Shown: positions 3,161 to 35,192 of the stretch, in pieces
Numbering within the stretch: the stretch's first letter is position 1
Layout: each line of letters opens with the position of its first letter
Assembly: GCF_035084215.1 (NCBI RefSeq)
Contig: NW_027138739.1
Location: forward strand, 1-36,059
Direction: 5' to 3'
Length of the DNA: 36,059 nucleotides
Origin: Heptranchias perlo
Lineage: Eukaryota
The notes under the pieces: generated by a model
Seen by the model: the letters and a program-made list of their open reading frames with translations, nothing else
The model's database searches: none
Told to the model about the DNA's origin: nothing
Made by a program: the position numbers and the translations under genes

Positions 3161-3497
3161 GAAGTTTAGAGATTCCCGTAGCTGTGGATAGGATAACACC
3201 GGGGTAAACAGAGACAGAGCTAGATACCCAAAATATTACGCATATTGTGGAAACAAGGAAGCCATGTGACCAGGAAACAGAAACTGAGCGGGAACATTGA
3301 TAATGGCGGATGGAGATTATCATAGACAGGCCACACTGACCTGCTGGCAGGTTGCCAAATTGGCTGCTGAGGCAGAAAAAATAAGCAAACTAGCAGAGGC
3401 AAATACAGTCTATGTAAACCAAATTATACAGCAAATCTCACCAAAATATTAACGTCTACATTTGGGCAAAGAAAGAAGAAGACTGCATAGACAACTA

Positions 3498-4216
3498 AAT
3501 CATAGAATCGTTACAGCACAGAAGGAGGCCATTCGGACCTTCGAGCGTGTGCTGACTCCTTGTAAGAGCAATCCAGTCAGTATCCCCAGCTCTTTTCCTG
3601 TAGCCCTGCAATTTTTTTCTCTTCAAATATTTATCCAGTTCCTTTTTGAAAGTCGCGATTGAATCTGCCTCGACCATCCTTTCAGGCAGTTCATTCCATA
3701 TCATAACCACTCGCTGTGTAAAGAAGTTTTTCCTCACTTCATCTTTTGTTCTTTTGCCAATCACCTTAAATCTCTTTCCTCTGTTTCCCGACCCTTCTGC
3801 CAATGGGAACAGTTTCTCTGTTTTTACTTTATCTAAACCGGTCTTAAATTTAAACACTTCTATCAAATCTCGTGTCAACCTTCTCTTGTCTAATGAAAAC
3901 AACCCCAGCTTCTCCAGTCTATCCACGTAACTGAAGTCCCTCCTCCCTGGGAACATTCTAGTAAATCTTTTCTGAACACTTTCTGAGGCCGTCACATCCA
4001 TCCTAAAGTGCGATGCCCAGAATTGGGCACAATAATCCAGTTTGTAAAGGCTCATCATAACCTGTTTGGTTTTGTACTCTATGCGTATATTTTTATTAAA
4101 AACAGGATTCCCTATGCTTTTTAACTGCTTTCTCAACCTGTCCTGCCACCTTCAAAGATTTGAGAACTCATAACTCCAGGTCTTTCTGTTCCTGCACCAC
4201 CTTTAGAATTGTACCA
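3498..4216 (-). mobile_element. CR1-like LINE ORF2 C-terminal fragment
   Basis: ORF 3495-4136(-) contains LDYCAQFW, VQKRFTRM, RLEKLGLFSL and FFTQRVVMIWN. Confidence 0.9.
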
Positions 4217-11279: not shown

Positions 11280-12562
11280 TAATAATCAAAGAGAGCCAGC
11301 ATGCAGTTGTAAAGTGTAGTTCACGCATGAGGAATCTGATTGAATTTGTTGAAGAGGTGTCTAAAATAGTGGACAGGGGAATATCTCTATGACGGTTGTT
11401 GATATCGACTTCCAGAAGACATTCGACAAAATCCCTCATAAGAGACTGTTAGCTGAAGTTGAAGCTCAGGGAATTGAGGGAAAATTATTGACTTGGTTAG
11501 GAATTTTTCTGAGGGGCAGGAGACAGACAGTTGGTATAATGGGCAGGTACTCAAATTGGCAGGATGTGACTAGTGGCGTCCCACAGGGATTTGTGTTAGG
11601 GCCTCAGCTATTCACTGTAATTATTAACGGCTTAGATGACGGGATAGAGAGCCACATATCCAAATTTGTCGACGGAAAAAAAGATAGGCAAGATAGCAGT
11701 ATAGATGGAAGCATAAAATTACAGAGAGTTATTAATGTATTAAGTGAATGGGCAAAACTGTGGCAAATGGATTTCGTTATAAGCAATTGTGAGGTCATCC
11801 ACTTTGGACCGAAAAAGAATGGATCAGAGTACTTTCTAAATAGTTAAAAGCTCGAAATAGTGGAGCTCCAAAGAGACTTACGGGTACATATGCAGAAATC
11901 ATTAAAATACAGGAAATAATCAAAAAGTTTAATGGAATTCTGGCCCTTATATCTTGACGATTGAATACAAGGCCGGTAGAAGTTATGATGCAGCTGTACT
12001 TAGTTCTTGTGAGACCACGCCTGAAGTACTGTGTTCGGTTCTGGGCAGCGCACCTTAGGCAGGATATATTGGCCAAGGGGGGAGTGCAGCGTAGATTGAC
12101 TGGAACGATACCTGGACTCCAAGGGTTAAATTTCGATGAGAGGTTACACAAACTAGGGTTGTATTACCTGAAATTTAGAATACTAAGGGGTGATTTGATC
12201 GAAGATTTCAAGATATTAAGGGGATTTGATAGGATAGATAAAGAGGAATTATATCCGCTGGTTGGGGAGCCAAGGATTCGGGGACATAACATAAAAACTG
12301 GACTTTCAGGAATGAAGATAGGAAACGCTTCTACACGCAAAGGGTGGTTTAAGTTTGGAACTCTCTTCCGCAAACGGCAGTTGATGATTGCTCAATTGTT
12401 AATTTTGAATCTGAGATTGACAGATTTTTGTTAACCAAAGTGATTCAGTGATTTGGGACTAAGGCAGCTCTATGGGGTTACGTCACAGATCAGCCATGAT
12501 TTCATTGAATGACTGAACAGGCTGGAGGGCCGAAATGGCCTACTCCTGTTCCTCGGTTCCTA
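11280..12562 (+). mobile_element. CR1-like LINE RT domain to 3' end
   Basis: ORFs 11389-11847 (DFQKTFDKIPH, VTSGVPQGFVLGPQLF) and 11961-12434 (RPRLKYCVRFW) are followed by a CCTACTCCTGTTCCT tail. Confidence 0.9.
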
Positions 12563-13059: not shown

Positions 13060-15572
13060 AGTTGCAACATGGAAACAGACGGTTAGACCCAGCCAGACTG
13101 TGTCGCCGATTGCCCTCCAAGCAAACAATTCGTTCTTATCACATTTACCCACCCGGTTTCCACCTCGCTAAAACCGCATTCCTGCCTCCACCTGTCCAAT
13201 CTAATCGTGAATGTTGACATAGAAGATCCTGGCTCAACCACGAACCCTGGAAGTGAATTCCACAGCCTGCTGTGTGATGGAGTTTCTCCTGCCCTCTGTT
13301 CCAAATCTCTTACTTTTAATCCTTTATCTGTGGGTACTCGTCTTGATTGCTCAACCATGGAAACAATCTGTTTCTGTCTACCCTGTCCCATTATTCCATC
13401 ATTGTAAACACTTCTATTATATCGCCCCATAATCGAAGATGTTCGAACGAAAAAAAAAATGTTTTCAAACTTTGTTAAAATTTATATTTCCTCATACAAA
13501 GCAGCATCCTAGTCACTCTGTGTTGCAATATTCTTCCTATAGTGTGGAGCCCAATACTGCACACAGTATCCTAACTGAGGTCTTATTAAGATTTTATAGG
13601 CTCATCATCACCTATTGGCTTTCATATTCTCTACATCTTATAATAAACCTAGAATTCCATTAGCTTTTCTCTAGCCTGATCAACATGAGGTGCTGCCATT
13701 AATGTCCTGTGAACCCATGTCCCCAAATCCCTCTTCTTCCACAGCACTGAGCCTGCTTCCATTCAGAGTATAATTGCGACTGTTTTTCTTTAAAAAAATG
13801 TATCAACTCACACTTGCTGATAATGAATTCCATCTGCCACCATTCGGCCCATTCTCCCATTTTATTAATATCCCTTTGAAGCTTCTTTTGGTCTCCGAAA
13901 GAATTATCTGTACTCCTATTTTGGTCTCATGCTCCAATTTCGACACCACTTTCTCGAGGCCTAGATCCCGATCATTGGTATACGTTGTGAATGGAAGTGT
14001 CCCCAGAACCGAATCCTGTGGGATATCACGACCAACTTCCAACCCTTCTGAATATAGTGAGCTCTCTGTGGGACATCGCTACCCACCTCCAATCACTCTG
14101 AATATAGTGAGCTCTCTGTGGGACATCGCTACCCACTTCCAATCACTCTAACTATAGTGAGCTCTCTGAAACGAATTCTGTGGGATATCACCACCCACTT
14201 CCAACCACTTTAAATATAGTGAGCTCTCTGAACTGAATTCTGTGGGATATCACTACACACTCCCTACCACTCTGCATACATTCAGCTCTCTGTGGGATAT
14301 CACTACTCACTTCCAACTACTCTGAATATAGTGAGGTCTGTGTGGGATATCACTACCAACTTCCAACCACGCTGAATATAGTTAGCTCTATGAACCGAAT
14401 TCTGTGGGATATCACGACCCACTTCCAAACCCTCCGAATATAGTGAGCACTCCGAACCGAATCCTTTGGGGTATCACTACCCACTTCCAAACCCTCTGAA
14501 TATGGTGAGCTCTCTGTGGGACATCGCTACCCACTTCTAACCACTCTGAATATAGTGCGCTCTCTGAACTGAATTCTGTGAGATATCACTACCCACTCCC
14601 TACCACTCTGCATATATTGAGCTCTCTGTGGGATATCACTACCCACTTCCTACTACTCTGAATATAGTGAGGTCTCTGTGGGATATCCCTACCCACTTCC
14701 AACCACTCTAAATATACTGAGCTCTGTGAACTGAATTCTGTGGGATATCACTACCCACTCCCTACCACTTCTGCATATATTGAGCTCTCTGTGGGACATC
14801 ACTACCCACTTCCAACCACTCTGAATATAGTGAGCTCTCCGAACCGAATCCTTTGGGATATCACTACACACTTCCAACCCCTCTGAATATGGTGAGCTCT
14901 CTGTGGGACATTGCTACCCACCTCTAACCACTCTGAATATAGTGCGCTCTCTGAACCGAATCCTGTGGGTTATCACCATCCACTTCCAATCCCTCTGAAT
15001 ATAGTGAGCTCTCTGTGGGACATCGCTACCCACATCCAACCACTCTAAATATACTGAGCTCTCTGAACTGAATTATGTGAGATATCACTACCCACTCCCT
15101 ACCACTCTGCATATATTGAGCTCTCTGTGGGATATCACTACCCACTTCCAACCACTCTGAATATAGTGAGCACTCTGTGGGATATCACTACCCACTTCTA
15201 ACCACAATGAATATAGTGAGCTCTCTGTGGGATATCTCTACCCACTTCCAACCCCTCTGAATATAGTGAGCTCTCCGAACCGAATCCTTTGGGATATCAC
15301 TACCCACTTCCAACCCCTCTGAATATTGTGAGCTCTCTGTGGGACATCGCTACCCACTTCCAACCACCCTGAATATAGTGAGCTCTCTTAACTGAATTCT
15401 GTGGGATATCACCACCCACTTCCAACCCCTCTGAATATGGTGAGCTCCCTTATTCCTATCTTCTAATCGTTTTTAATCCCGTTTGCTCTCCTCTCCTTAT
15501 ATCTATACTTCTTATCTTTACATAATTTCCAATGTATTAACTTGTTGAATGCTTCCTTAAAGCCCATGTACA
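13060..15572 (-). mobile_element. Old CR1-like LINE (RT to 3' end) containing an internally expanded minisatellite
   Basis: ORF 13803-14042(-) reads DIPQDSVLGTLPF, a variant of GVPQGSVLGPLLF. The upstream motif M.FKEAFNK (DFQKAFDK) resumes at ~15540-15572, beyond the array. Confidence 0.7.
14005..15449. repeat. Minisatellite, ~26 units of 50 bp and 62 bp
   Basis: The unit is TGTGGGATATCACTACCCACTTCCAACCACTCTGAATATAGTGAGCTCTC, with or without a 12-nt TGAACCGAATTC-type insert. Anchor spacing is 50 or 62 nt. Confidence 0.95.
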
Positions 15573-15992
15573 TTGCAAACTGGATTACTAAATGTCAAGA
15601 GACCACATCGCAAACCAAACTGCAGGTCTAGTTCTATTAATGCGGCTGATGCGAAGTTTGTCACCGTAAAATATTATAGTGATAATTATTTGAGTGTGCG
15701 CTTTTTTTCTGCTTTCGCTGTGTTAAACTGCTATTTCAGCGCGGATATTATTATTAATACAGCATTAAAGTGTCACCCAATTATTACACTGGGAGAAGTC
15801 TGGAAGCACAATTCACATGGATGCGAAAATCCCAACACAGTTCCCATGAAGCGTGTGCTCCACAACTCTACTGATCTCTTCATGTTAATTGGATGAAGAT
15901 TCCTCTAGTGTGACTATGGATATAGGGGACAAGATGCAACACATCACAAACCGCGAGCTGTACTCACTGCGAATGGTCTCTCACTCTGCCCT

Positions 15993-16025
15993 ATGCAAAT
16001 AAGCTCACGCTCTCGCGATTTAAAA
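15993..16025 (+). promoter_or_regulatory. IgNAR V promoter: octamer ATGCAAAT (15993-16000) plus TATA-like TTTAAAA (16019-16025)
   Basis: A perfect heavy-chain-orientation Ig octamer lies 18 nt upstream of a TATA-like box, about 100-125 nt 5' of the leader ATG. This is the classic Ig V promoter layout. Confidence 0.8.
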
Positions 16026-16119
16026 GGACGGTGCTCAGATACACACGGTTACACAGCACAGTCGGTGTTGAGGTCTGGAGTTGGCCATGTTTAAAGTATT
16101 CACTGCTGGTGAAGAAACA

Positions 16120-16162
16120 ATGAATATTTTCTGGGTTTCGGTCCTTTTAGCCTGGTTACCGA
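16120..16162 (+). CDS. IgNAR: IgNAR leader (signal peptide) exon 1, MNIFWVSVLLAWLP
   Basis: ATG at 16120 starts a hydrophobic leader of the shark NAR MNIF... type. It ends at a phase-1 donor A|GTAAGT (16162/16163). Confidence 0.93.
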
Positions 16163-16303
16163 GTAAGTGCAGTATTTTTAAAGAGATTAAATGTTCATTG
16201 GATAAAACTGAGCGGCTGCGTCTAAATTGTGGAAATGTCCTTGATTTTAACTCTTGTATTGTTTCAGAGACGCGATGTATTAAATATATTTTTCTTCATT
16301 CAG

Positions 16304-16654
16304 ATGCCTTCGGTATAAGAGTGGACCAAACACCAAGAACGGCCACAAAAGAGGCAGGCGAATCCCTGACCATCAACTGCGTCTTAACTGATACTAACTG
16401 TGGGTTGTACAGCACAGGATGGTTCCGGCAATATCCGGGTACAAAAGATTGGGTTCGCATATCCATTGGCGGACGATTTGTCGAATCAGTCAACAAGGGA
16501 GCAAAGTCTTTTTCTCTGCGAATCAACGATCTGACAGCTGAAGACAGCGCCACTTATTACTGCAAAGCGGGTATACTATGGGGTGTGTTCTGGTGTGATA
16601 GGGAGGATTACCAATACTATGATGGAGCTGGCACCGTGCTGACTGTGAACTCTG
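16304..16654 (+). CDS. IgNAR: IgNAR variable domain exon, already joined V-(D)-J (type II VNAR; Cys22, Cys29, Trp36, Cys83, Cys94)
   Basis: Acceptor TTTTTCTTCATTCAG| at 16303. The exon translates (N)AFG-IRVDQTPRTATKEAGESLTINC...WFRQ...DSATYYC-KAGILWGVFWCDREDYQYY-DGAGTVLTVNS. It lacks the CDR2 region, as VNARs do. The J motif YDGAGTVLTV is contiguous with V, and the donor G|GTAAGT is at 16654/16655. Confidence 0.97.
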
Positions 16655-17395
16655 GTAAGTGACCTCTCTTGCTACATTATCACTAAGATTTTTTTCATAG
16701 AACATATGAAGAATTAGTGTTCTCGTTAAAATGGCCTTAAACGAACAGGGCAATAGCTGAAGCTGTTTTTGGAGGTTCTGTTAGGTTCGCTGTCAGTTTA
16801 TTTGTTTTAAACATAATAATCTTTTCCAAAAGAGATTTTGCTCGAGAATAAAACGAGCCTATGCTTAAATGTATGACGAACCTACGCTTATATACATAAC
16901 GAATGCCAAAATGAACATATATTTTAATATATAACGAACGTATATTTAAATATATAATGAACCTCTAAACAAGCCTGTTTTAAAATATATAACTAAGCAC
17001 CTATGGATCATTTAAGATGCTGATTTGAATAGTTATGAATCTCACCGGTGTGATAGTTTAAACAGTTAGAACAGAACCAGCCGAGTGCCGTTATTCTCCT
17101 CACTGAGGCGGCCCAGTATATTCCTGTTACACAGTATTTCTGATTCAAAGAATTTATACAATTCTGGGGCGAGGAAAGTTTGCTGCAAACAAGGGATTAA
17201 TTCAACGCGCAATTTAAGAAAATATTGAGTACGAATTCTTTCCCCCCTCTAAAATCATCCCTTATTAAATAAAAAAATGATAAATTAATACCGGTACCGA
17301 ACCTTTTTATATATTGTCTGTTCAAATCTTGAAATTTGTGACTCTGGATTAACGGCGCATGCGTCACAGTGAACCAGAAAGAAAAGAAAATGATT

Positions 17396-17679
17396 GGGGG
17401 TGAAATTGATCTGATCGAGGAGCGCGGAACGGGCGATAGCGAATCGGCCGCCTTGAAACATGGCATCAGATTGTCCTTCACACGGACTTGGAAAATATTG
17501 CGAATGTTCTTAAGATCAAACCAAGCAAAACGGACAGTGAAACTACCCGAATCTCCAAAAAGAGCTCGAACTATCGTTCTGTGAAATTCAGTGGAGAGAA
17601 GGTCTAGCGCGGTGTAAAACAGGCCGCCGATTCGCTCGCAGCCCGTGTCGCGTTACTGGCGCAGACCAATTTCACCCCC
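17396..17679. mobile_element. MITE with 18-bp terminal inverted repeats (PIF/Harbinger-like GGG termini)
   Basis: GGGGGTGAAATTGATCTG ... CAGACCAATTTCACCCCC match at 17/18. A subterminal inverted match GCGAATCGGCCGCCT / AGGCCGCCGATTCGC is also present. Confidence 0.75.
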
Positions 17680-18344
17680 TATACTGTAGGTCTGTGCGAG
17701 GCCTGTTTCAATGGAAGCCAGTCTCCTGGACACTCGTATTTCAGACAACAGAAACGCTCTGTGTTTAAGATTGTGCCGAGTAGCAGAGAACATTGAAACT
17801 GCGGTAGGTTTGAGTGTGATAATTGAAATTCTCTTTTAATATCCATGTATAGAAATAAAGTAAACGGTAACTTCATTATTTTATGCCTCGGGGAGAATCG
17901 TGAAGTCTTTGACTCACTGTTTATACATTTTACTGTCAGTTTACTTATTTTAATTCAAGAAACAATGTGTTTGTTTGGAACCTGAGTGTTGGTCTGATAG
18001 ACTGGATATTCAGTCAGCATTTCGAAGAGAGGAGAATCCCAGAGCTGATGTGCAGAGTAAGGGGGATGTTTTTGCCATCCCATGGTCTGGATATCGCTTG
18101 CCTGGAGATTGGACAGGTTAAGCCTCGGTGCAGATGTTGGGAGGGGCGGGTCCGCATACATGGATACCAAGCGACACTGAATCCGAGAAAATATTTACCT
18201 TAAAAATCCGAAAACGTTAAACTCGATCGACACAATCCCACCAAATATTCCCTGGTCAGGTAGAATATAGGTAGAAAAGAGGAATCAACTTGCGTTTATA
18301 AACGCATCTTTATTGCAAAGCGCTTTATTGCCGATGAATTTATC

Positions 18345-18770
18345 GAGTAAATCCCCCTCTACACTGTGTCATGTAACACTCCCAGTTCAGGAGCAGTAGG
18401 GGTCAGATAGAGGGTACAGCTCCCTCGATACTGTCCCACCAAACACTCCCAGTGCAAGTACAGCACAGGATAGATAAACAGTAAAGCTCCCTCTACGCTG
18501 TTAAAACAAATGGTCCGAGGGCAGGTATCGCACAGGTTTAGATACAGCGTAAACCTCCCTCTCCATTGTCCCATCAAACACTCCCACCGCTGGTACAGAG
18601 TTAGATACAGAGCAAGGCTCCCGCTACACTGTCATATCAAACACTTCCATGGCAGTTACAGCACGGGTTAGATACGGAGTTGCACTCCCTCTGCACTCTC
18701 CCACTAAATACTCCCAGGGCAGGTACAGATTCGGTTAGATAGAGGGTAAAGCTGATCTACACTCTATCCG
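18345..18770. repeat. Degenerate ~65-bp minisatellite (~6-7 units)
   Basis: Recurrent AGAGTAAAGCTCCCTCTACACTGTCCCATCAAACACTCCCAGGGCAGGTACAGCACGGGTTAGATAC-like units. Confidence 0.85.
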
Positions 18771-19673
18771 TAGGAGAAGGTAGATTACCATCCTTACCGG
18801 ATACCAGAGCAGTTTACCATAATGGCCCCTGCATTGAATCTGAGAAAATATCCAGCATAAAGCTCCCAAAATGTGGAAGTCAGTAACATTAGAGAATACT
18901 CTTTATGAACGGGAGCAATGAGATGCAGATTGTACTAGAAAGAGTGGTGAATGGAAGGGTTTCATCGCAGACATAGAACACCGCACTTATCGAAAGGAAA
19001 AACCTTCTAAGAACAGAAGAATGTGCGCGGGCAGAAACTCCGATTGGTTCCTTTACACAAATCCATGCAAATTGTTCTCCCATGAATTCGCTCCCAAAAC
19101 AACTGCTACTCCCCAGTTTAAATAATCCTAAATCTTATACCTTTCTCTTCCGAAATCATAGGACCATCCATTTAATCTGTCCGTTGCACTAAACCAGATG
19201 TTAACTGGTTTATTAAAAAACGGGCCATGCAGTAGAAGAGTGAACTGAGGAAACTCAAGCGTGAATCGTGGTGCCCTGAGACGGCCCACAGTGATGTTTA
19301 AGGTTAATATCCTTCCTTGCCTCCTCTGAGTGAAAAAAAAGGAATAAAGCAATGGTATTAATATCTCTGTCAATGGTATTCACTTTCCCACTATCATAGG
19401 GAGATCTTTATATATAATCTCCCAATTTGCACAAGGATGGCGAATTTCGTACTTGCATTCTGTCGTCGTTGTCCCGATAAATAACTTGTTCACTTCCACC
19501 TCGTAGTTTCGTTAATTCATCTTTCCTTTTTTCAAAGATTTGCATCATTTTTTTCACTTTTGTAAAGCATCTGAAGTTGTCCTTTGAGATTTATCTCTTT
19601 CTCTCTGACTAATTCATTGTTTCAGCAGCATTATTTTGAAGGCTTTTGTCCGAATCCAGCCCGACCCTGCCTA

Positions 19674-20780
19674 TCATAGAATCATAGAATGATACAGCAC
19701 AAAAGGAGGCCATTCGGCCCATCGGGCCTGTGCCGGATCTTTAAAGCTAGACAATTAGTCCCACTCCCCTACTCTTTCCCCATAGCGCGGCAAATGCTTT
19801 CACTGCAATTAATGATCGAATTCCCTTTTGAAATTTATTATTGAATCTGCTTCTACCACCCGTTCAAGCAGTGAATTCCAGATCATTACAATTCGCTGCT
19901 TAAAAAAATCTCCTCATCTCGCCTCCGGCTGTTTTGCCAATGACCTTAAATCTGTGTCCTCTGGTTACCGATCCGCCTGCCACTGGAAACGGTGTTTCCT
20001 TATTTACCCTTTCGAAACCTTTCATGATTTTCAACACCTCTGTGAAATCTCCCCTTAACCTTCTCTGCTCTAAGGAGAACAACCCGAGCTTCTCTAGTTT
20101 CTCCACGTAACATAAATCCCGCATCCCTGGTTTCTGGTAAATCTCCTCTGCACCCTCTCGAAGGCCTTGATACCCATCTTAAAGCGTGGTGCCCAGAAAT
20201 CGACACAATGCTCCAACTGGGGTCTAACCAGTGATATCTGAAGGTTTAGCATAACTTCTTGCTTTTATACTCTATGCTTCTATTAATAAAGCCCGGGATC
20301 CCATCTACTTGTTTAACAACCTTCTTAACTTGGCGTGCTAACTTCGAAGATTTGTGTACATCTCCCCCGAGGTCTCTCTGGTCCTGCACCCCCGTTAACA
20401 TCGTACCATTTTATGTGTGTTGTCTCTCCTCATTCTTCCGACCAAAATGCATCACTTCCAACACACTGCGCTAAATTTCATTTGCCACGTGTTTGACCAT
20501 TTCATCAGTCTGTCTATGTCCTCCTAAAGTCTGTTAATATCCTCCACATTGATTACTACATTTCCGAGCTTCGTGCCATCTGCAAATTTTGAAATTATGC
20601 CTTGTATCCCCAAGTCCAGGTCATTAATAAATATCAAAAAGAGCAGTGCTCCTAATACCGACCCCTGTATACTTCCCTCCAGTCTGAAAGACAACCGTTT
20701 ACCGCTACTCTCTGCTTTCTGTCCCTCAGCCAATTTCGTACCTAGGCAGCCACTGCCCCTTTAATGCGATAGGCTTCAAT
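19674..20780 (-). mobile_element. CR1-like LINE (RT C-terminus to 3' end) in the J-C intron
   Basis: ORFs 20524-20733(-) QGSVLGALLFLIFINDLD..SKFADGTK and 19900-20124(-) LEKLGLFSLEQRRLRGD, with an ATCATAGAATCATAGAAT tail. Confidence 0.9.
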
Positions 20781-21149
20781 TGTGTTATACTATGTTCCTT
20801 GCATACTTAAAGTATATCTATTTGATTGGATATCTCACTTTCAGACATTCAGAGCGCGAAACATCTCTGGCCCACAGCACATATTGTGAATTTGGGTGGA
20901 CGCTTCGGAATGATTCATCATCTGTTCATTTCAGTCATTGGCAAATTTTGAGGAGCACATTCCCGAATGGCTGGAGCCTGATTTTAATAAATTTTCCCCA
21001 GTCTTCTGATCTACCCTGAAAACAATGTGCTCTTTATCTCGCTGTGCTTCTTTCTAACCAACGTGAAACGGCGCTCTCGCAGCGACTGGTTTATAGTCCA
21101 TTGAAATTTGGATTCAGGGATTTTGGAAATGTTATTTAGGAAGTTGTGA

Positions 21150-23680
21150 AGAAGATTTTTCGGAAGTTCCTTGGGCAAATCGAAATACTAAGAGTAGAAT
21201 TAAAAAGTGGAATCAACTAACCTAAAGATGGGATTAGATTAGAGATGTAAAAGGAAATCTTCTGCAGGAAGATGAATTAATCGCAGAGATATTAAACAAG
21301 GACTTAGTCTCGGCTTTTACAGAATAATGTTTTGATGGGAATGGAAGGTTTGAGCTGGAGGGTGAGGTTCAATTAGATTGAATAAGTAGAGATAAATAAG
21401 GAGTGCTGAGAAAATTGGTGGAACTCATTCTATCCTAGAATGTTGAGAATAGACAAAAAGCAAAAAGCAGATGCTCGGCCCTCAAACATTCAAACATCCT
21501 AGGATGTGGAACTTTTGCCAGAGGACCGAGGTAATGTCTTTATCAAAGAAGGGAGAAAGGTTTACACAGGATAACCGTGGGGCCGTCGGCTTACTGTCAG
21601 TGGTGGATCATCTTCTAGAGTCATGTTACTGGAGAAAATTAACATTCACTTGCAGAGACATCGTTTCATTAAAGACAGCTAGCATGGATATGTAAACGGC
21701 AAGTTCTCTCAGACAGATTTAGTTCGACAGTTCTTCGAAGAACTCTACAGATTTCCAGGCTCAATTTTGGACACTGTACACCAGGACGGATAGATTGGCC
21801 TTGGAGGGAGTGCAACGCAGATTCACCAGAATAATACCGAGGCTAAAAGGGTTAAAATATGAGGCAAGACTGCATGGACTAGGCGTGCATTCCCTTGATT
21901 AAAGAAGATTAGTGGGTGATCAAATTAATGTGTTACGATTATTAAAAGATTTAATATGGTGGATAGAGATAAACTGTTGCCTTTGTTTGAGGAATGTAGA
22001 ACAAGGAGGCATAACCTTAAAATTAGTCCTAGGCCGTATCAGGCGGTTGATACGATACCAAATAATGGGTTTGTTAATCAAATAAATTCGTTCCTTTTCA
22101 ACATTCGCAAAGACTTTGCAGGGGAAGCACAAAATTAAATTATCAAGGAATATAAAAAACGAACAGTAAAGTATTCTACAGACAGATAAATAACGAAAGG
22201 ACAGGGTTAGGGCCACAAAGGGAAACATAAGATAAACTCGCAGGTAATGAGCAGTGAAATGGCACAAATATTGAACAGTTACTTTGCCTCAGTATTTACC
22301 AGGGAGAATAATAAGGTGGGCAGGACATTAGAAGAAAAGATAAAACAAACTAAGACATTTAAAATAGAAAGGGGGGATATAATTGATCAACTAATCAAGC
22401 ATAGAGAGGATCAAACCTCCGGTCCGTATGGATTTCATGTGCTCATAATAAAAGAAGTTAGGGAGGATATAGCAGACGCACTATTACATGTACATAAAAT
22501 TCATTAGCAAAGGGAATAGTGCCAGAAGACTGGTGGACAGCTAATGTGACAATTATATATTAAAAAGGAGATTCGAACAAGTCCAGGGAATTATAGACCA
22601 GTTAGCCTAACGTCGGTGATAGGAAAGATAATGGAAACTTTGCTCAAAGATGTAATAGAAAAACATCTAGAAAACGAAAATATAATAAAGAATAGTCAGA
22701 AAGCAAAGACATGCTTGACCAACCTTACTGAATTGTTTGAAGAAGTAAAAGGAAGGTTAGACAAGGGGTAATTTAGTAGATGGAATATGTTTGTATTTTC
22801 AAAAGGCATTCGATACTGTAGTGCATTGTAGATTCATCTGATGTCATAACATGTGGAGTCAGGGAACAGGTAGCAAAATGGAAAGCAAGCTGGCTACAAA
22901 TTAGAAAACAGAGAGATTGGTTTAAGGGTAGCTACTAAGAATGGGAGAAGTTGGGAAGTGGTTTTTCAAAGGGATCAGTGCTCGGGCCACAGTTGCTGAC
23001 AAATTTATATGAACAATTTGGACCGGGAATCGGGGGGTGTTGTTCATACAAAGGTAGAATACGTCAGGTTGCAAGAAGACATTATTGAACTTGCAGAACG
23101 GGCGTGTAATTGGCAAATGAATTTCAATATATTTAATTGTGAAGTGGTGCATTTTGTTTGGGAGAATAAGGAGGACATATACTGCATGGATAAAAGGAGT
23201 TAAAATGGGGTAGAGGAGCAAAGGGATCTCGGGGTACAGGTATACAAATCAGTAAAAGAGGCGACGCATGTTTTAAGGCCATAAAAAGGCAAACCAAGCA
23301 CTGGGTTCATTTCTAGAGGAAGGGAAATTGAAAAGGAGAGACGTTTTGTTAAACTTGTATAGAAATTTGCTTTTACCACACTTGGAGTACTGTGCACAGT
23401 TATGATTTCCATATTATAAAAAATATATTTAGCTCATATATGCATTGAAGAAGGTGTAAAAAAAGATTCACAAGGATGATACCAGAACTGAGAGAATATA
23501 CCTGTCAGGAAAGATTGAACAGGCTGGGGTTGTTTTTTTCTGGAAATTGAAAGGTTCAGGGTGACCTGCTTGAGATCTTTAAGATAATGAAAGGGTTTGA
23601 TAGATTAGTCGTAGAGAAAATGTTTCCACTTGTGGGGGAGTCCAAAGTCAGACATCGTAAATATTAGATAGTCACTAATA
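21150..23680 (+). mobile_element. Several nested/decayed CR1-like LINE ORF2 fragments
   Basis: MAQILNSYFASVFT (ORF 22247), PGNYRPVSLTS codons (~22582) and NWQMNFN (ORF 23009). Confidence 0.8.
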
Positions 23681-23681
23681 A

Positions 23682-24630
23682 ATCCTGGTCAAAGAGAAAG
23701 GTTTTAATGAGCGTTTTAAAAAGGAGAGAGGGAGTGAGGCGGAGAGGTTTAGCGAGACAATTCCAGAAATTAAGGCCTGGGCTGCTGAATGCACGGCCAC
23801 CAATTGTGGGGCGATGGAAAGCGGGAATGTGCAAGAGGCCAGAATTCGAGGATCGCAAAGATTTCGAAGGGTTGTAGGGCTGGAGACGGTTAAAGAGATA
23901 GAGAGAGGCAAGGCTATGGAGTGATTTGTGAACAAGGTTCAGAATTGTAGGGCTGGAGAACGTTAGAGATAGGGAGGGGCGAGGCTATGGAGTGATTTGT
24001 GAACAAGGTTCAGAATTGTAGGGCTGGAGAACGTTAGAGATAGGGAGGGGCGAGGCTATGGAGTGATTTGTGAACAAGGTTCAGAATTGTAGGGCTGGAG
24101 AACGTGACAGAGATCGGGAGGGGCGAGGCTATGGAGTGATTTGTGAACAAGGTTCAGAATTGTAGGGCTGGAGAACGTTACAGAGATAGGGAGGGGCGAG
24201 GCCATGGAGGGATTTGACCACAAGGATGAGCATTTTAAGTTCGAGGTGTTGCTGGACTGGGGGACGATATAGGTCAGTGAGCACAGGGGTGATGGGTGAA
24301 CGGGAGTTGGAGAGAGTTTGGATACGATCAGCAGAGTTCTGTATGAGCTTAGGTTTACGGAGAGTGGAAGGTGGGAGGCCGGCCAGGAGAGCATTGGAAC
24401 AGTCGAGTCCAGAGGTAACAAAAACATGGATGAAGGTTTCAGCAGCAGATGGGCCGAGGCAGGGGCGGAGATTGGCGACGTGATGGAGGTGGAAGTAGGC
24501 GGTCTGGTGATGGAGTGGATACGGGGTCGGAAGCTCAGCTCAGTGTGAAATGGGACGTGGAGGTTTAGAGCGGTCTGGTTCAGTCCCTGATCGTGGCCAG
24601 AGAGGGTGATAGAGTCGGTGGGAAGGTAAT
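23682..24630 (-). mobile_element. L2-like LINE 3' fragment with internal tandem repeat
   Basis: Minus-strand LVHKSLHSLAPPDLCHVLQPY, RSSNSGLLHIP..TIGGRAFS and FKTLIKTFLFDQ motifs. A homologous + strand copy lies at 35700-36059. Confidence 0.8.
23872..24225. repeat. 71-73-bp tandem repeat, ~5 copies
   Basis: TTGTAGGGCTGGAGA anchors occur at 23872, 23945, 24016, 24087 and 24160. Confidence 0.92.
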
Positions 24631-24706
24631 GGAGAGAAAGGTGGGCTATTTTCTTGAGAACCAGAAAGTGAAGCGGCAGTAAAATTGTAACTGTATTTGA
24701 TAAGCC

Positions 24707-25007
24707 AAATGGAGAAAAAACTATTTGCCGTTGTCGATAACTAGCGGGTATCAATTTAAATGGAAAGAAACTATTTGCCGTGGGCGGTAACTGGGGGGTA
24801 TAAGTTTAAATGGAGGGAAACTATTTGCCATGGTCGATAACTAGTGGGTATAATTTTAAATGGAGAGAAACTATTTACCGTGGGCTATAACTAGTGGCTA
24901 TAAGTGTAAATGGAGGGAAACTATTTGCCGTGGTTGAGAACTCGTGGTTATAAGTTTAAATGGAGGGAAACTGTTTACCGTGGGCTATAACTCGTGGGTA
25001 TAAGTTT
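24707..25007. repeat. 50-bp tandem repeat, 6 copies
   Basis: AAATGG anchors occur at 24707, 24758, 24808, 24858, 24908 and 24958. Confidence 0.92.
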
Positions 25008-26050
25008 CAGATCATCAGCAAAAGATGAATGGAGATATTTGGAGATTTATTTTTATTATGGAGATGGTTGTCAGGACACGGAACCTCCAACCATAAACAA
25101 TGCTGTTTGCAGAATCATGGTATCATAGTAGGTACAGCACAGGGGAGGACATTCGGCCGATTGTGCCTCTGCTGGGTCTTTGAAAGAGCTATCCAATTAG
25201 ACCCATTCCTCTGCTCATCCCCGTAGCCCTGGAAATTAGGTTAAAAGGAAGAAGGCAAATATTGAGAAAGAATGTACCGGGAAAGAAGAGGAGAATCGGA
25301 CTGCGCACATCCAGCCCTGATTATCGCTCCCTTAAGGTGAATAGATATAATATCACGGGCCGGGAATCTACAATTTCCCCATGTACTCTCCTGCTGTGAG
25401 CCATGGGCGGGCCCAGCGGAGTTTCCACTGGGAAGCGGATAGCTCTTCCACAGAGCCCGTAGTGGCGCGATGGGCCGAATGAATCCTTCAGTAATGTAAA
25501 ATATTTTAACTCTATCACTCCTTCGCCTAACATTACCAAAACCATTGCTGTCTCTGACCTCTGATTTACAAACTCGCTGCTGCAATCGTCTAGAAATCCA
25601 AACAACTCCTTCCTTAAGAAACGCCGGTTGCAAAATATTTCCCGGTAAAGTGACGGCATGAAACTGCTCCATCCCCAGGAAAATTAAAGCATGTTACTGG
25701 TAACAATAATCGATGTACATTTAAAATCTGACTGCAACTACACACCACTGGACAGTATAGATATTTTTCTTAAAATAAATTGATCATTATTCACTCCGAA
25801 ATTAACAAGTGATAAGAACATTATTTGAATGTTCGTTCATGACCGGAACTCATTTATCCCAACACGCCCACTGTAATATCAGCACATTCAAACCCAGCTT
25901 CAATGCATCCATGTGTGTTTAATTTGAAGGTGTCCGTGGCTGCGAGCAACGTGATACTGACCAGATAATCTGTTTTTAGGTGTTGGTTGAGGAATAAGTA
26001 TTGGCCAGGACTCGATATAAACGGTTTAATTGTCATTGTAATTTTCTCAG

Positions 26051-26368
26051 TGCAACTTACTCCACCGATCATCAGTCTCCTCTACTCTGCAAGTGACGAA
26101 CTGACAGCAAAGGGTTTTGTGCAACTGGTTTGCCTCATCAGCGAATATCAGCCAGAAAGCATTGCAGTGAGCTGGCAGAAGAACGGAAACGCTGTACAAT
26201 CGGGCTTTACAACCACATCCCCAGTTAAAAATTCGAATGGTGATTTTAGCTCCACGAGTCTCTTTAAAGTCACCCTGCAGGAATGGAACAGCGGGTCTCT
26301 TTACAGCTGCCAAGTGTCCCATTCTGCAACCAACAGTAACCAGCGGAAAGACATTAGAAAAACATCAG
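26051..26368 (+). CDS. IgNAR: IgNAR constant domain C1 exon
   Basis: Acceptor TTTTCTCAG|. Translation VQLTPPIISLLYS...VQLVCLISEYQPESIAVSWQK...EWNSGSLYSCQVSHSATNSNQRKDIRKTS has the C1-set Cys-Trp-Cys pattern. Donor G|GTGAGA; 318 nt; phase 1-1. Confidence 0.95.
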
Positions 26369-27167: not shown

Positions 27168-27342
27168 TGATGTGGAGATGCCGGTGATGGACACGGCTGG
27201 ACAAATGTAAGGACTTGCACAACACCAGGTTATAGTCCACCAGTTTTATTTTAAATCACAAGCTTTCGGAGCTTACCTCCTTCGTCAGGTGACGAAAATA
27301 AAACTGTTGGACTTTCACCTGGTGTTGTGCAAGTCCTTACAT
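27168..27342. mobile_element. Penelope-like retroelement pseudo-LTR remnant in inverted arrangement
   Basis: ATGTAAGGACTTGCACAACACCAGGT...AGTTTTATTT (27205-27251) is inverted at 27296-27342. The spacer carries a hammerhead-like core. Confidence 0.65.
27256..27292 (-). ncRNA. Minimal type I hammerhead ribozyme motif (Penelope-associated)
   Basis: The minus strand reads UCAC-CUGACGA-A-GGAG(GUAAG)CUCC-GAAA-GC-UU-GUGA. It has core boxes CUGANGA and GAAA, stem II GGAG/CUCC, stem I UCAC/GUGA and a palindromic loopless stem III. Confidence 0.6.
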
Positions 27343-27690
27343 CTCTCTCTGTCTGTCTCTCTCTGTGCCTCTCTATCTCTGTCCCTCACTCTCTCTCTGT
27401 CTGTTTCTCTCTCTCGCTCTGCTGTCTCTCAATATCTGTCTCTCTCAATTTGTCTCTCTCTGTGTCCCTTTCTCTCTCTCTGTGTCCCCCTTTCTCCGTC
27501 TCTCTCTGTCTTGCTCTCTCACCCTGTTTCTCTCTAACTGTTCGCCTGTCTCTTCCTTTTTCTTTCTCTCTGTCCTTCTCTCTCTGATTATCTCTATCAG
27601 TCTATTTCCCTGCCTCTCTCCCTATCTGTCTGTCACGCTCTGTCTCTCCATGTCCCTCTCTCTCTGTCTCTTGTTTCTTTCTCTCTCTCT
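27343..27690. repeat. Imperfect (CT)n/(CTGT)n microsatellite
   Basis: A pyrimidine-rich low-complexity tract between C1 and C2. It explains the spurious Leu/Ser ORFs at 27289-27811. Confidence 0.95.
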
Positions 27691-27893
27691 TAGTTTCGTT
27701 GAGTTGTACATAGTTTTGATTCGACTCAACATACGCGCAAACACCAAAATTATTTTTAAAAATTCAATAATAATCAGTAAGAGACCTTGCCGTGTTATGG
27801 ATTATCAATGAAATTAAAATCCTTGTTAAATTTCCGAAATCATCAACACTAAATCATCGCCCCGATTCTGAATCTCTCGTTTCTCACTGACAG

Positions 27894-28196
27894 AGCTCGC
27901 GGTATTTCTCAGAGACCCTTCCGTTGTCGAAGTTTGGCTCAATAAAACTGCCACCCTGGTGTGTGAAGTGGTCTCTACGGTTCCCACTGAGGTTACCATC
28001 TCTTGGACAGTGGGTGGAAAGATAAAGAATGAAGGAGTTCAAATTGAACCGGCTAAAAAGGATGGAAACCAATACCTGACCATCAGCCACTTGACCAGCA
28101 GCGTGGAAGAGTGGGATAGCGGGGTTGAATACTCGTGTTCGGCACAACAGGATCAATCATCTCCTCCGGTATTAAAACGAATCGGAAAGACAAGAG
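27894..28196 (+). CDS. IgNAR: IgNAR constant domain C2 exon
   Basis: Acceptor CTGACAG|. Translation ELAVFLRDPSVVEVWLNKTATLVCEVV...ISWTV...EEWDSGVEYSCSAQQ...GKTR. Donor G|GTGAGT; 303 nt. Confidence 0.95.
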
Positions 28197-28272: not shown

Positions 28273-28590
28273 TCGAGCCAATGAAGCCAAAGCTCCGCCT
28301 CCTTCCTCCATCACCAGAGGAGAGTCAAAGTAGGAGCGCCCCGACTCTCACATGTCTGATAACAGGATTCTACCCTGACAACATAATCGTTTCCTGGGAG
28401 AAGGACGGAGCGGCTATAAGCGCGAACTTTACCAGTTTCCCCAGTGCTCTTGAACAGGACCTAACCTTCAGCACAAGGAGCAACCTCATTTTGCCTTCAG
28501 AGGAATGGAAGAAAGGATCAAGATACACCTGTATCGCCTCACATCCCCCTTCACAATCCGGCGTGAAGGCGACCATCCGCAATCTGGAAG
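28273..28590 (+). CDS. IgNAR: IgNAR constant domain C3 exon
   Basis: Follows a 76-nt intron with acceptor TTACAG|. Translation VEPMKPKLRLLPPS...TLTCLITGFYPDNIIVSWEK...EEWKKGSRYTCIASHP...RNLE. Donor G|GTACGG; 318 nt. Confidence 0.95.
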
Positions 28591-33012: not shown

Positions 33013-33333
33013 GTGTATGTCATGAGACAGACATTTCTGTCATCATACTGAACCCTTCTTTTGAAGAGATTTGGACCAAACGAACAGCGACCATTCTTTG
33101 TGAAGTCGTTTATAGCGATTTAGAAAACGTCAGCGTGTCCTGGCAAGTGGATGGGAGTCGGAGAACGGAAGGAGTGGAGACTCAGGCTCCTGAGTGGAAT
33201 GGAAGTAAATCCACAATCGTTAGTAAATTGAAAGTCACCACGACAGAATGGGGCAGTGGGGTTGAATATTTGTGCTTCGTGGAAGACATTGAATTGCCAA
33301 CACCAGTGAAAATCTCCACCAGAAAAGTAAAGG
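33013..33333 (+). CDS. IgNAR: IgNAR constant domain C4 exon (with N-terminal linker Cys, GVCHET)
   Basis: Acceptor TCTTCTTTCCAG|. Translation GVCHETDISVIILNPSFEEIWTKRTATILCEVVYSDLENVSVSWQV...EWGSGVEYLCFVED...RKVK. The extra Cys is at the C3-C4 junction where IgNAR forms its interchain bond. Donor G|GTAAGC; 321 nt. Confidence 0.95.
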
Positions 33334-33409: not shown

Positions 33410-34112
33410 TAAGGATAGTGATAGACTTCAAGATGATATCGACAGGCTGGTAGAATGGACGGACACATGGCAGATGAAATTCAACGCAGAAAAGTGTGAA
33501 TTGATACCTTTAGGAAGGAAGAACGAGAAGAGGCAATATAAACTAAAGGGTACATTTCTGAAAGGGGAGCAGGAACAGAAAGACCTGGGGGTATATGTGC
33601 CTAAACCGTTGAAGGTGGCAGGGCAGGTTGAGAAAGCGATTAAGAAAGCTTAGGGGAACCTGGGCTTTATAAATAGAGGCAGAGAGTGCAAAAGCAAGGT
33701 GGTTATGATGAATCTTCATAAAACAGTGGTTCGATTACAACTGGAGTATTGTGACCAGTTCTGGGCACCGCGCTTTAGGGAGGATGTGTATGCCTTGGGG
33801 AGAGTGCAGAAGAGATTTAATGGAATGGTTCCAGGGATGAAGGACTTCGGTACGTGGTTAGAATGGAGAAGATGGGGCTGTTTTCCTTAGAACAGAGAAG
33901 TTTACAAGAACATTTGATCGAGGTATTCAAAATCATGAAGGGTCGAAACTGTGTCGATGGAGAGAGACTGCTCCCATTGGATGAAGGGTCAAGAACCAGA
34001 GGACATAATTTTGCAGGGATACGGGAATCGGGCAGGGGAGTGGGGCGAGCTGGATTGCTCTTGCAGAGAAACGGCACGTACTCGACGGGCCGTAACAATT
34101 CTATGATATCAT
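33410..34112 (+). mobile_element. CR1-like LINE 3' fragment in the C4-C5 intron
   Basis: LQDDIDRL, WQMKFNAEKC, LEYCDQFWAP and GLFSLEQR motifs, with a TTCTATGAT tail. Confidence 0.88.
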
Positions 34113-34460
34113 GAAATGCTCTTATAATCAGTGAAACATAGTCCGGGATCCTGCCATTCACCCCACGGGTAAAGAATAGCGAGAAAAATGTAAGCGGTTT
34201 GAAACTGTTGCGTCACAACAGTATCATCGTTATCCAAATATGAGATTGTCCCCAACTCTTAGCAAAATAACATCAGGTCACAATGAAAACTCCCAAAAGA
34301 AAGAACATTAAAGAAATCCATGGCCCCGCAGAGAAATGTGTAAACTCTCTCAGATAACAATTCCAATTGTCCAAAGACGCAAATTACCAGCAGACGGGAA
34401 TGCGAAGTGAAGGACGGACAAGAGACAGACTCAGTTTAACAAATATTGTTCTCTTTCCAG

Positions 34461-34843
34461 TTGACGGAATGTATCCTCCTAAAGTCTACGTCCTGCCTCC
34501 ATCAGCGGTCGAGATTGACACTGAGAAGACGGCAACTCTGGTGTGTTTAGCAACCGGCTTTTACCCTGCCGAGATTTACGTCGCGTGGATGGCCAATGAC
34601 ACCCTTTTGGATTCAGGTTACACCACCCAACCGGACACGGAGAAGAAAAGTGGTTCCAGCTCCATTGTCAGCAGACTGAGAGTCACCGCAGCGGAGTGGA
34701 ACGGCGGGACCACTTACTCCTGTTTAGTGGGACACCCGTCTCTCACAATGAATTTACACAGAAGTATAAATAAATCTTACGGTAAACCTACTTTAGTTAA
34801 TGTTTCACTAGTTCTAACCGACAGTTTTCAATCGTGTACATAA
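34461..34843 (+). CDS. IgNAR: IgNAR constant domain C5 plus secretory tailpiece (GKPTLVNVSLVLTDSFQSCT*)
   Basis: Acceptor CTCTTTCCAG|. Translation VDGMYPPKVYVLPPS...LVCLATGFYP...VAWMAN...YSCLVGHPSL. The tail has an NVS sequon and a penultimate Cys, and TAA ends at 34843. Confidence 0.95.
34781..34787 (+). other. Internal splice donor for the membrane (TM) isoform, G|GTAAAC
   Basis: GGTAAA encodes G-K at the C5/tailpiece boundary, the canonical Ig heavy-chain position for splicing to TM exons. No TM exon is recognisable downstream within the window. Confidence 0.75.
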
Positions 34844-35128: not shown

Positions 35129-35192
35129 AATAAATGCAGAATGAAAACCTCCTGACTTCCCGATTCGTTGTTTGTGTGCGTGTTATCTTGGT
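35129..35192 (+). terminator. Secretory-form polyadenylation signal AATAAA (35129-35134) with downstream GT-rich element
   Basis: AATAAA lies ~285 nt after the stop and is followed ~30 nt later by TTCGTTGTTTGTGTGCGTGTT. Confidence 0.7.

Follow-up and report, generated by a model that had tools for sequence, protein, structure and literature searches.

A contiguous, RSS-free V-D-J exon in an IgNAR gene of Heptranchias perlo: a possible germ-line join

The stretch of DNA analysed here (the window) spans positions 1-36,059 of contig NW_027138739.1 of the Heptranchias perlo assembly GCF_035084215.1, probably the entire contig, and carries an intact IgNAR heavy-chain gene of seven exons, in which all splice sites are canonical and all six introns run from GT to AG (Table 1). 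Domain searches were run exon by exon, the exons never being joined into one protein query, and they revealed five C1-set constant domains that correspond to C1-C5 of IgNAR; the solved structures matched by C1 and C4 are both annotated as novel antigen receptor. The secretory tail ends in SFQSCT, with a Cys two residues from the C-terminus. As the window stops 1.2 kb past the secretory stop codon, the transmembrane exons would lie outside it. Identification as a NAR-TcR was rejected on account of the five C exons and the secretory tail, which are those of IgNAR, and a processed retrocopy was rejected because the six introns are kept. Upstream of the leader, an Ig octamer is followed by a TATA-like box, and a promoter role for this pair is inferred by analogy with the layout of classical Ig V promoters. 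A preliminary description made from the sequence had called the gene intact and not retrocopied, and this was borne out by the presence of the leader intron and every other intron, including the 9.4-kb one between J and C1, of the promoter motifs, of five open C exons and of an AATAAA signal. The 678-aa open reading frame given in that description has to be corrected, since the coding length summed over the exons is 2016 nt, or 672 codons.

Table 1. Coordinates of the IgNAR gene features along the window, with the basis of each assignment
Feature	Coordinates	Strand	Basis
Putative promoter: Ig octamer ATGCAAAT at 15993-16000, followed about 19 nt later by TATA-like TTTAAAA (about 16019)	15993-16027	+	read directly
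Leader exon, 43 nt from ATG (ATG + 14 codons + 1 nt), donor GT	16120-16162	+	read directly
Leader intron, 141 nt, GT..AG	16163-16303	+	splice-site reading
V portion of the joined exon, from FR1 to Cys-Lys-Ala, non-canonical Cys in CDR1 (DTNCGLYS)	16304-16568	+	V-set and VNAR matches; split copies in X5 and X9 diverge at 16568
V-to-J junction, 38 nt, putative D1-D3 remnants with or without N/P nucleotides, encoding GILWGVFWCDRE with one Cys	16569-16606	+	lies between both departure points of the split copies
J part (..YQYYDGAGTVLTVNS), ending ..DGAGTVLTVNS, donor GT at 16655	16607-16654	+	match to X1, X3 and X5 contigs begins at 16607
J-C intron, 9,396 nt, containing repeats and fragments of transposons	16655-26050	+	splice-site reading
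C1 exon, 318 nt	26051-26368	+	C1-set, E 1.4e-21; solved IgNAR C1 4q97, 2e-43; AG/GT
C2 exon, 303 nt	27894-28196	+	C1-set, E 4.5e-10
C3 exon, 318 nt	28273-28590	+	C1-set, E 8.6e-20
C4 exon, 303 nt	33031-33333	+	solved IgNAR C4 2mkl, 1e-43; C1-set
C5 exon and secretory tail (..GKPTLVNVSLVLTDSFQSCT), coding to 34840, stop TAA 34841-34843	34461-34843	+	C1-set, E 7.5e-23
First AATAAA after the stop, about 290 nt on	35129-35134	+	read directly

Leader exon, leader intron and V-D-J exon share one stop-free frame (open reading frame 16081-16662, 193 aa); retention of the leader intron would insert 47 residues and cause no truncation. Among the introns between constant exons, that separating C2 from C3 (28197-28272) measures only 76 nt, against 1.5 kb for C1-C2 and 4.4 kb for C3-C4. 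Tandem repeats are found on both sides of the V-D-J exon. A 1.4-kb array, whose units are about 50 and 112 nt long and 73-85% similar, occupies 14008-15447 and ends about 550 b upstream of the promoter octamer, and three further arrays lie in the J-C intron (18347-18753, 67-nt units; 23872-24257, units of about 72 nt; 24668-25057, 50-nt units). A CT-rich low-complexity tract in the C1-C2 intron (27290-27810) gives rise to spurious Leu/Ser-rich open reading frames. Three other frames, two of them upstream of the gene (3495-4136 and 11389-12434) and one in the C4-C5 intron (33474-34161), appeared by eye to be fragments of LINE-type reverse transcriptases, and related copies are repeated within the window. 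The window holds no stretch of N, and its right end falls inside an interspersed repeat.

The variable exon (16304-16654, 351 nt) is flanked by AG and GT and is stop-free in the frame that begins at 16306, encoding by translation a V domain of 116 aa. This domain matched the Pfam V-set (E 3.7e-12), and its best 30 solved relatives were all shark VNARs (7spo, 7spp and 4hgk among them; E 1.3e-41 to 1e-37). The alignment with VNARs is free of gaps from FR1 to FR3 and the domain is short, lacking the C'/C'' region at CDR2, as expected for the single N-terminal V domain of a VNAR. An extra Cys in CDR1 and another in CDR3 (..VFWCDRE..) give it the Cys pattern of type II VNARs. It differs from type III, as CDR1 has no Trp beside its Cys and joining is complete, not confined to D1-D2. 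A search of 5.8 billion proteins returned 15 matches to the V-D-J domain, the best of them VNARs of Squalus acanthias and nurse shark at 64-67% identity, and the CDR3 of the window occurred in none of these 15, a negative that applies to proteins of 64-203 aa. The claim that V, CDR3 and J form a single in-frame exon stands.

Recombination signal sequences (RSSs) were sought across the window. The heptamer CACAGTG is absent within about 700 b of the V-D-J exon and occurs at chance frequency across the window, a strict heptamer-spacer-nonamer pattern gave zero matches anywhere in it, and a relaxed 12/23 scan gave 9 weak matches against 5.3 expected from shuffles, none of them less than 3 kb from the exon. 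A hidden or degenerate RSS was thus rejected, as both scans stayed at chance level with nothing near the exon, in agreement with the absence of RSSs noted earlier. V, D and J accordingly lie contiguous in genomic DNA, free of RSSs and with introns and C exons in place, which is the anatomy of a germline-joined Ig gene.

A single sample of the species (S1) supplied public runs, four of them DNA-like and four RNA-like, and a related species added one thin run (X9, depth 2-4). They were compared as assembled contigs aligned with positions 15450-18340, where contigs show presence but not absence and drop minor variants. The eight longest pieces of each run were considered, the shortest being 153 nt in the DNA runs and 61 nt in the RNA-like run X5. 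One contig of X5 matched V up to 16568 and then continued with TCAGAGC-CACAGCA, that is, coding nucleotides of the V end followed by a heptamer; the match of an X9 contig to V also ends at 16568. On the other side, contigs of X1, X3 and X5 enter the window at 16607 after ..GAATGACTGTG-GTT, a heptamer (GACTGTG; CACAGTC on the other strand) followed by 3 nt of J, and these three nucleotides (GTT) are missing from the J end of the window. The X9 counterpart, running from heptamer into J, joins the window at 16615, and X9 shows split V and J alone. The species thus holds ordinary split IgNAR clusters beside the fused exon of the window. The join itself looks RAG-made, to judge from its sequence, because the signals are cleanly lost, the J end is trimmed, the V match ends at 16568 and a D-like insert is present. 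The RAG-type joining proposed earlier gains support in the same way, since the split copies depart exactly at 16568 and 16607 with a heptamer at each.

The same contigs provided further observations on the split clusters. A J-like copy in X3, at 16623, shows an extended coding flank following its heptamer (..CTGTG-GCATTTACGGTTACTGTTCCTCTAT-GATGG) and represents a paralogous J, with an insertion of about 8 nt relative to the J of the related species. The X5 contigs that run from V into an RSS and from an RSS into J are sterile transcripts of unrearranged IgNAR clusters, present at noticeable depth, and X5 also covers the J-C intron at a depth of about 55. In S1, the start of this intron (16646-17372) falls into two classes, one about 99% like the window and the other about 10% diverged and carrying a 58-nt deletion (16863-16922).

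Relative to the unique contig upstream of the gene, figures for the depth of the two intron classes range from one to four times, the window-like class standing at about twice. Two classes at raised depth point to several IgNAR clusters. Such a family of near-identical clusters, with the J-C intron in two contig classes (put at 2-4 times the depth of the upstream contig in this argument), might have favoured an assembly artefact of another kind, either the chimeric joining of reads that stem from different clusters or the loss of the D region by collapse. We regard this as very improbable, as a collapse would not delete the RSSs cleanly, shorten V and J at their ends and still retain a D-like insert of 38 nt in frame.

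The locus of the window is present in the DNA of the sampled animal at ordinary depth, a statement that concerns the locus and not its joined state. The upstream contig matches the window at 449 of 450 bases (15450-15899) with depths of 26.8 in X1 and 16.2 in X3, and the T of the window at 16530 is found at depths of about 31.7 and 19.7 in the same runs. All four DNA runs of S1 contain 0.67 of the window's sampled words. At the junction, no contig bridging 16568-16607 was found among the eight longest pieces per run, a set that a bridging contig of about 100 nt in the DNA runs would escape. Junction coverage was also read from depth bins, with some coverage in X1 and none in X3, and this measure was dropped because overlapping contigs inflate the bins.

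These data bear on a second origin for the join, namely that a B or plasma cell rearranged an ordinary split IgNAR cluster somatically and that the assembler kept the product as a small contig. We consider this a real possibility, somewhat short of an even chance. It could have happened if the DNA was drawn from blood, spleen or another lymphoid-rich tissue, and the joined gene would then be neither heritable nor informative about the locus. The depth of IgNAR V and J in the RNA of the same sample is very high, for which reason lymphoid tissue of the animal appears to have been sampled. Moreover, split V-RSS and RSS-J copies nearly identical to the V and J of the window occur in that sample, at this or another locus, and the missing bridging contig among the longest pieces and the word share of 0.67 point in the same direction. 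The join is productive, and its CDR3, type II-like, Cys-paired and about 17 residues long, is typical of expressed adult VNARs. The size of the contig, its freedom from N and its end in an interspersed repeat fit an unplaced minor contig.

On the other hand, an assembler needs several concordant long reads per contig, and polyclonal B cells seldom supply them for one junction. A contig of 36 kb would need several long reads with one and the same junction, and a single IgNAR clone would presumably make up a tiny fraction of the cells. A somatically joined gene might moreover be expected to carry hypermutation, which peaks in V and J and extends over the first 1-2 kb. Most differences between the window and the contigs involve a window letter that is present in some contigs, or in one run and not another, and these look like differences between near-identical clusters or alleles. 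Among the sites listed, at least nine (15630, 16087, 16098, 16237, 16958, 17130, 17210, 17324 and 18210) are private to the window, no S1 contig agreeing with it. Seven of the nine listed lie between the promoter and +1.3 kb, an excess that is not significant (binomial p about 0.06); of the others, one precedes the promoter by 420 b and one follows it by 2.1 kb. No site in V or J at which all contigs disagree with the window is among those listed. A reading of the nine private sites as hypermutation was therefore not upheld, and the lack of a signature at the listed sites would speak against a somatic rearrangement, the upstream and the far downstream site looking allelic rather than like products of AID. 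The private sites are explained equally well if, as we assume, the window represents one haplotype whose private alleles are in the minority against the other haplotype and a paralogue together and drop out in contig building, an account that the depth figures fit. One of these sites has a visible effect: at 16087 the A of the window makes an in-frame ATG 33 nt upstream of the leader ATG, where all S1 contigs have C (CTG).

The RNA evidence comes from one RNA-like run of S1 (X5), of unrecorded tissue and age. Depth in this run was very high over V and J and low over the junction. X5 yielded no junction-spanning piece of 100 nt or more, among pieces reaching down to 61 nt, and no contig carrying the T of the window at 16530. 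The first of these results counts in favour of a somatic join and the second against it, since a V with this T in an active split cluster should appear in X5. Together they argue against abundant expression of the fixed CDR3 in the tissue of X5, where the gene, if inherited, would be at best weakly expressed. The suggestion of an innate-like or early-life antibody in the preliminary description receives no support. Early-life expression, as known from other joined genes of sharks (PMC5192425), and a silent relic are equally compatible with the X5 result.

In the latter case the join would be inherited, as a relic or as a presence/absence polymorphism, and unused as an antibody despite its open frame. 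This alternative, which we rate as rather unlikely, agrees with the lack of an abundant CDR3 or T16530 transcript in X5 and with the upstream in-frame ATG that the private A at 16087 creates in the 5' leader region; in addition, one of three IgNAR loci of nurse shark is reported not to be expressed (PMC11641339). Against it, the seven open exons, canonical splice sites and promoter motifs are intact, the transcript evidence is that of a single run of unrecorded tissue and age, and early life is the main period of expression for the germline-joined Ig genes known from sharks (PMC5192425).

We favour a heritable germ-line join of the IgNAR V-D-J, to which we give about an even chance, on the grounds that somatic joins in a polyclonal population seldom assemble and that IgNAR is known in partly joined form. 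The V, three D and J segments of an IgNAR mini-locus would have been fused by RAG-type recombination in a germ-line cell of an ancestor, as has been reported for shark IgM and light-chain clusters and for IgNAR D-D joins, and the fused locus would since have been transmitted through the germ line with V-D-J as one exon. If so inherited, every cell would carry the joined gene, whose transcription and splicing to C1 could proceed independently of RAG, and the product would be a type II-like VNAR with one fixed CDR3. Germ-line RAG joining is common in IgM and light chains of cartilaginous fish (PMC2193156, PMC5192425), and IgNAR D-D joins have been made in the germ line of nurse shark and bamboo shark (PMC4622739, PMC8692893). 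That the join is inherited and the gene also used, as a RAG-independent IgNAR of fixed CDR3 with an innate-like or early-life role and possibly a polymorphism of joined and split forms, we consider unlikely.

Several findings weigh against a germ-line origin. Germ-line joins show little sign of TdT, with trimming and P nucleotides and little or no N region (PMC2193156), and the G-rich sequences at the ends of the window's 38-nt junction (GGG, GGGAGG) may represent N nucleotides, as a somatic join would have them. The junction is in frame and its CDR3 Cys is able to pair with that of CDR1, as expected of a selected B cell. Also counted against it are the want of a bridging contig among the pieces listed, the word share of 0.67, the nine private sites and an X5 run without junction or T16530. 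Finally, the window is probably a whole contig of 36 kb, the type of small piece that collects somatic or minor variants.

If the join is of germ-line origin, it would be the first fully germline-joined IgNAR described and would add a single-domain isotype to the phenomenon. Its VNAR specificity would have been fixed by evolution and not by a B cell, so that its target can be asked, and it would provide a dated case in which a germ cell underwent four RAG joins. If the join is somatic, the contig would be an assembly by-product and a warning against reading antigen-receptor contigs from lymphocyte-containing tissue as germ line.

Germ-line joining of Ig genes is the classic sign of RAG action in the germ cells of sharks, and newborn sharks are thought to receive ready-made antibodies from their joined IgM and light-chain genes. 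Partial IgNAR joins and full IgM and light-chain joins were found in the literature searched, and no fully joined IgNAR was described there (PMC4622739, PMC8692893, PMC5192425). The somatic type II VNARs (PDB 7spp and 2coq, cDNA libraries) have the same domain, the same Cys pattern and a CDR3 of similar length; they come from cDNA or B-cell DNA, whereas the copy in the window belongs to a genome assembly and retains both its introns and 16 kb of DNA upstream. For a different receptor and taxon, rearranged TCR V(D)J sequences have been reported from the channel catfish germ line, likewise as a claim of heritable rearrangement outside the Ig families usually found joined (PMC6170632).

Closer in structure are the joined VDJ genes of IgM (IgM1gj of nurse shark) and the joined VJ light chains of sharks and skates, which likewise are fully joined V exons in cluster-type genes; their origin has been ascribed to RAG acting in germ cells, and early-life expression is known for some of them (PMC2193156, PMC5192425). 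These genes belong to other isotypes, and their germ-line status was established by cloning from non-lymphoid DNA, whereas the window is known from an assembly. Closest in isotype are type III IgNAR of nurse shark and the white-spotted bamboo shark's 'pre-joined D' IgNAR2/5/6, mini-loci with RAG-type joining in the germ line as proposed here (PMC4622739, PMC8692893). Germ-line joining of D segments limits CDR3 diversity in those clusters, and type III is preferred early in life in nurse shark (PMC4622739, PMC8692893). Type III VNARs carry a Trp next to the CDR1 Cys, in contrast to the DTNCGLYS of the window. Moreover, only D-D joining is complete in type III and in IgNAR2/5/6, where V-D and D-J joining still need RAG, whereas in the window all four joins are made and the exon is free of RSSs.
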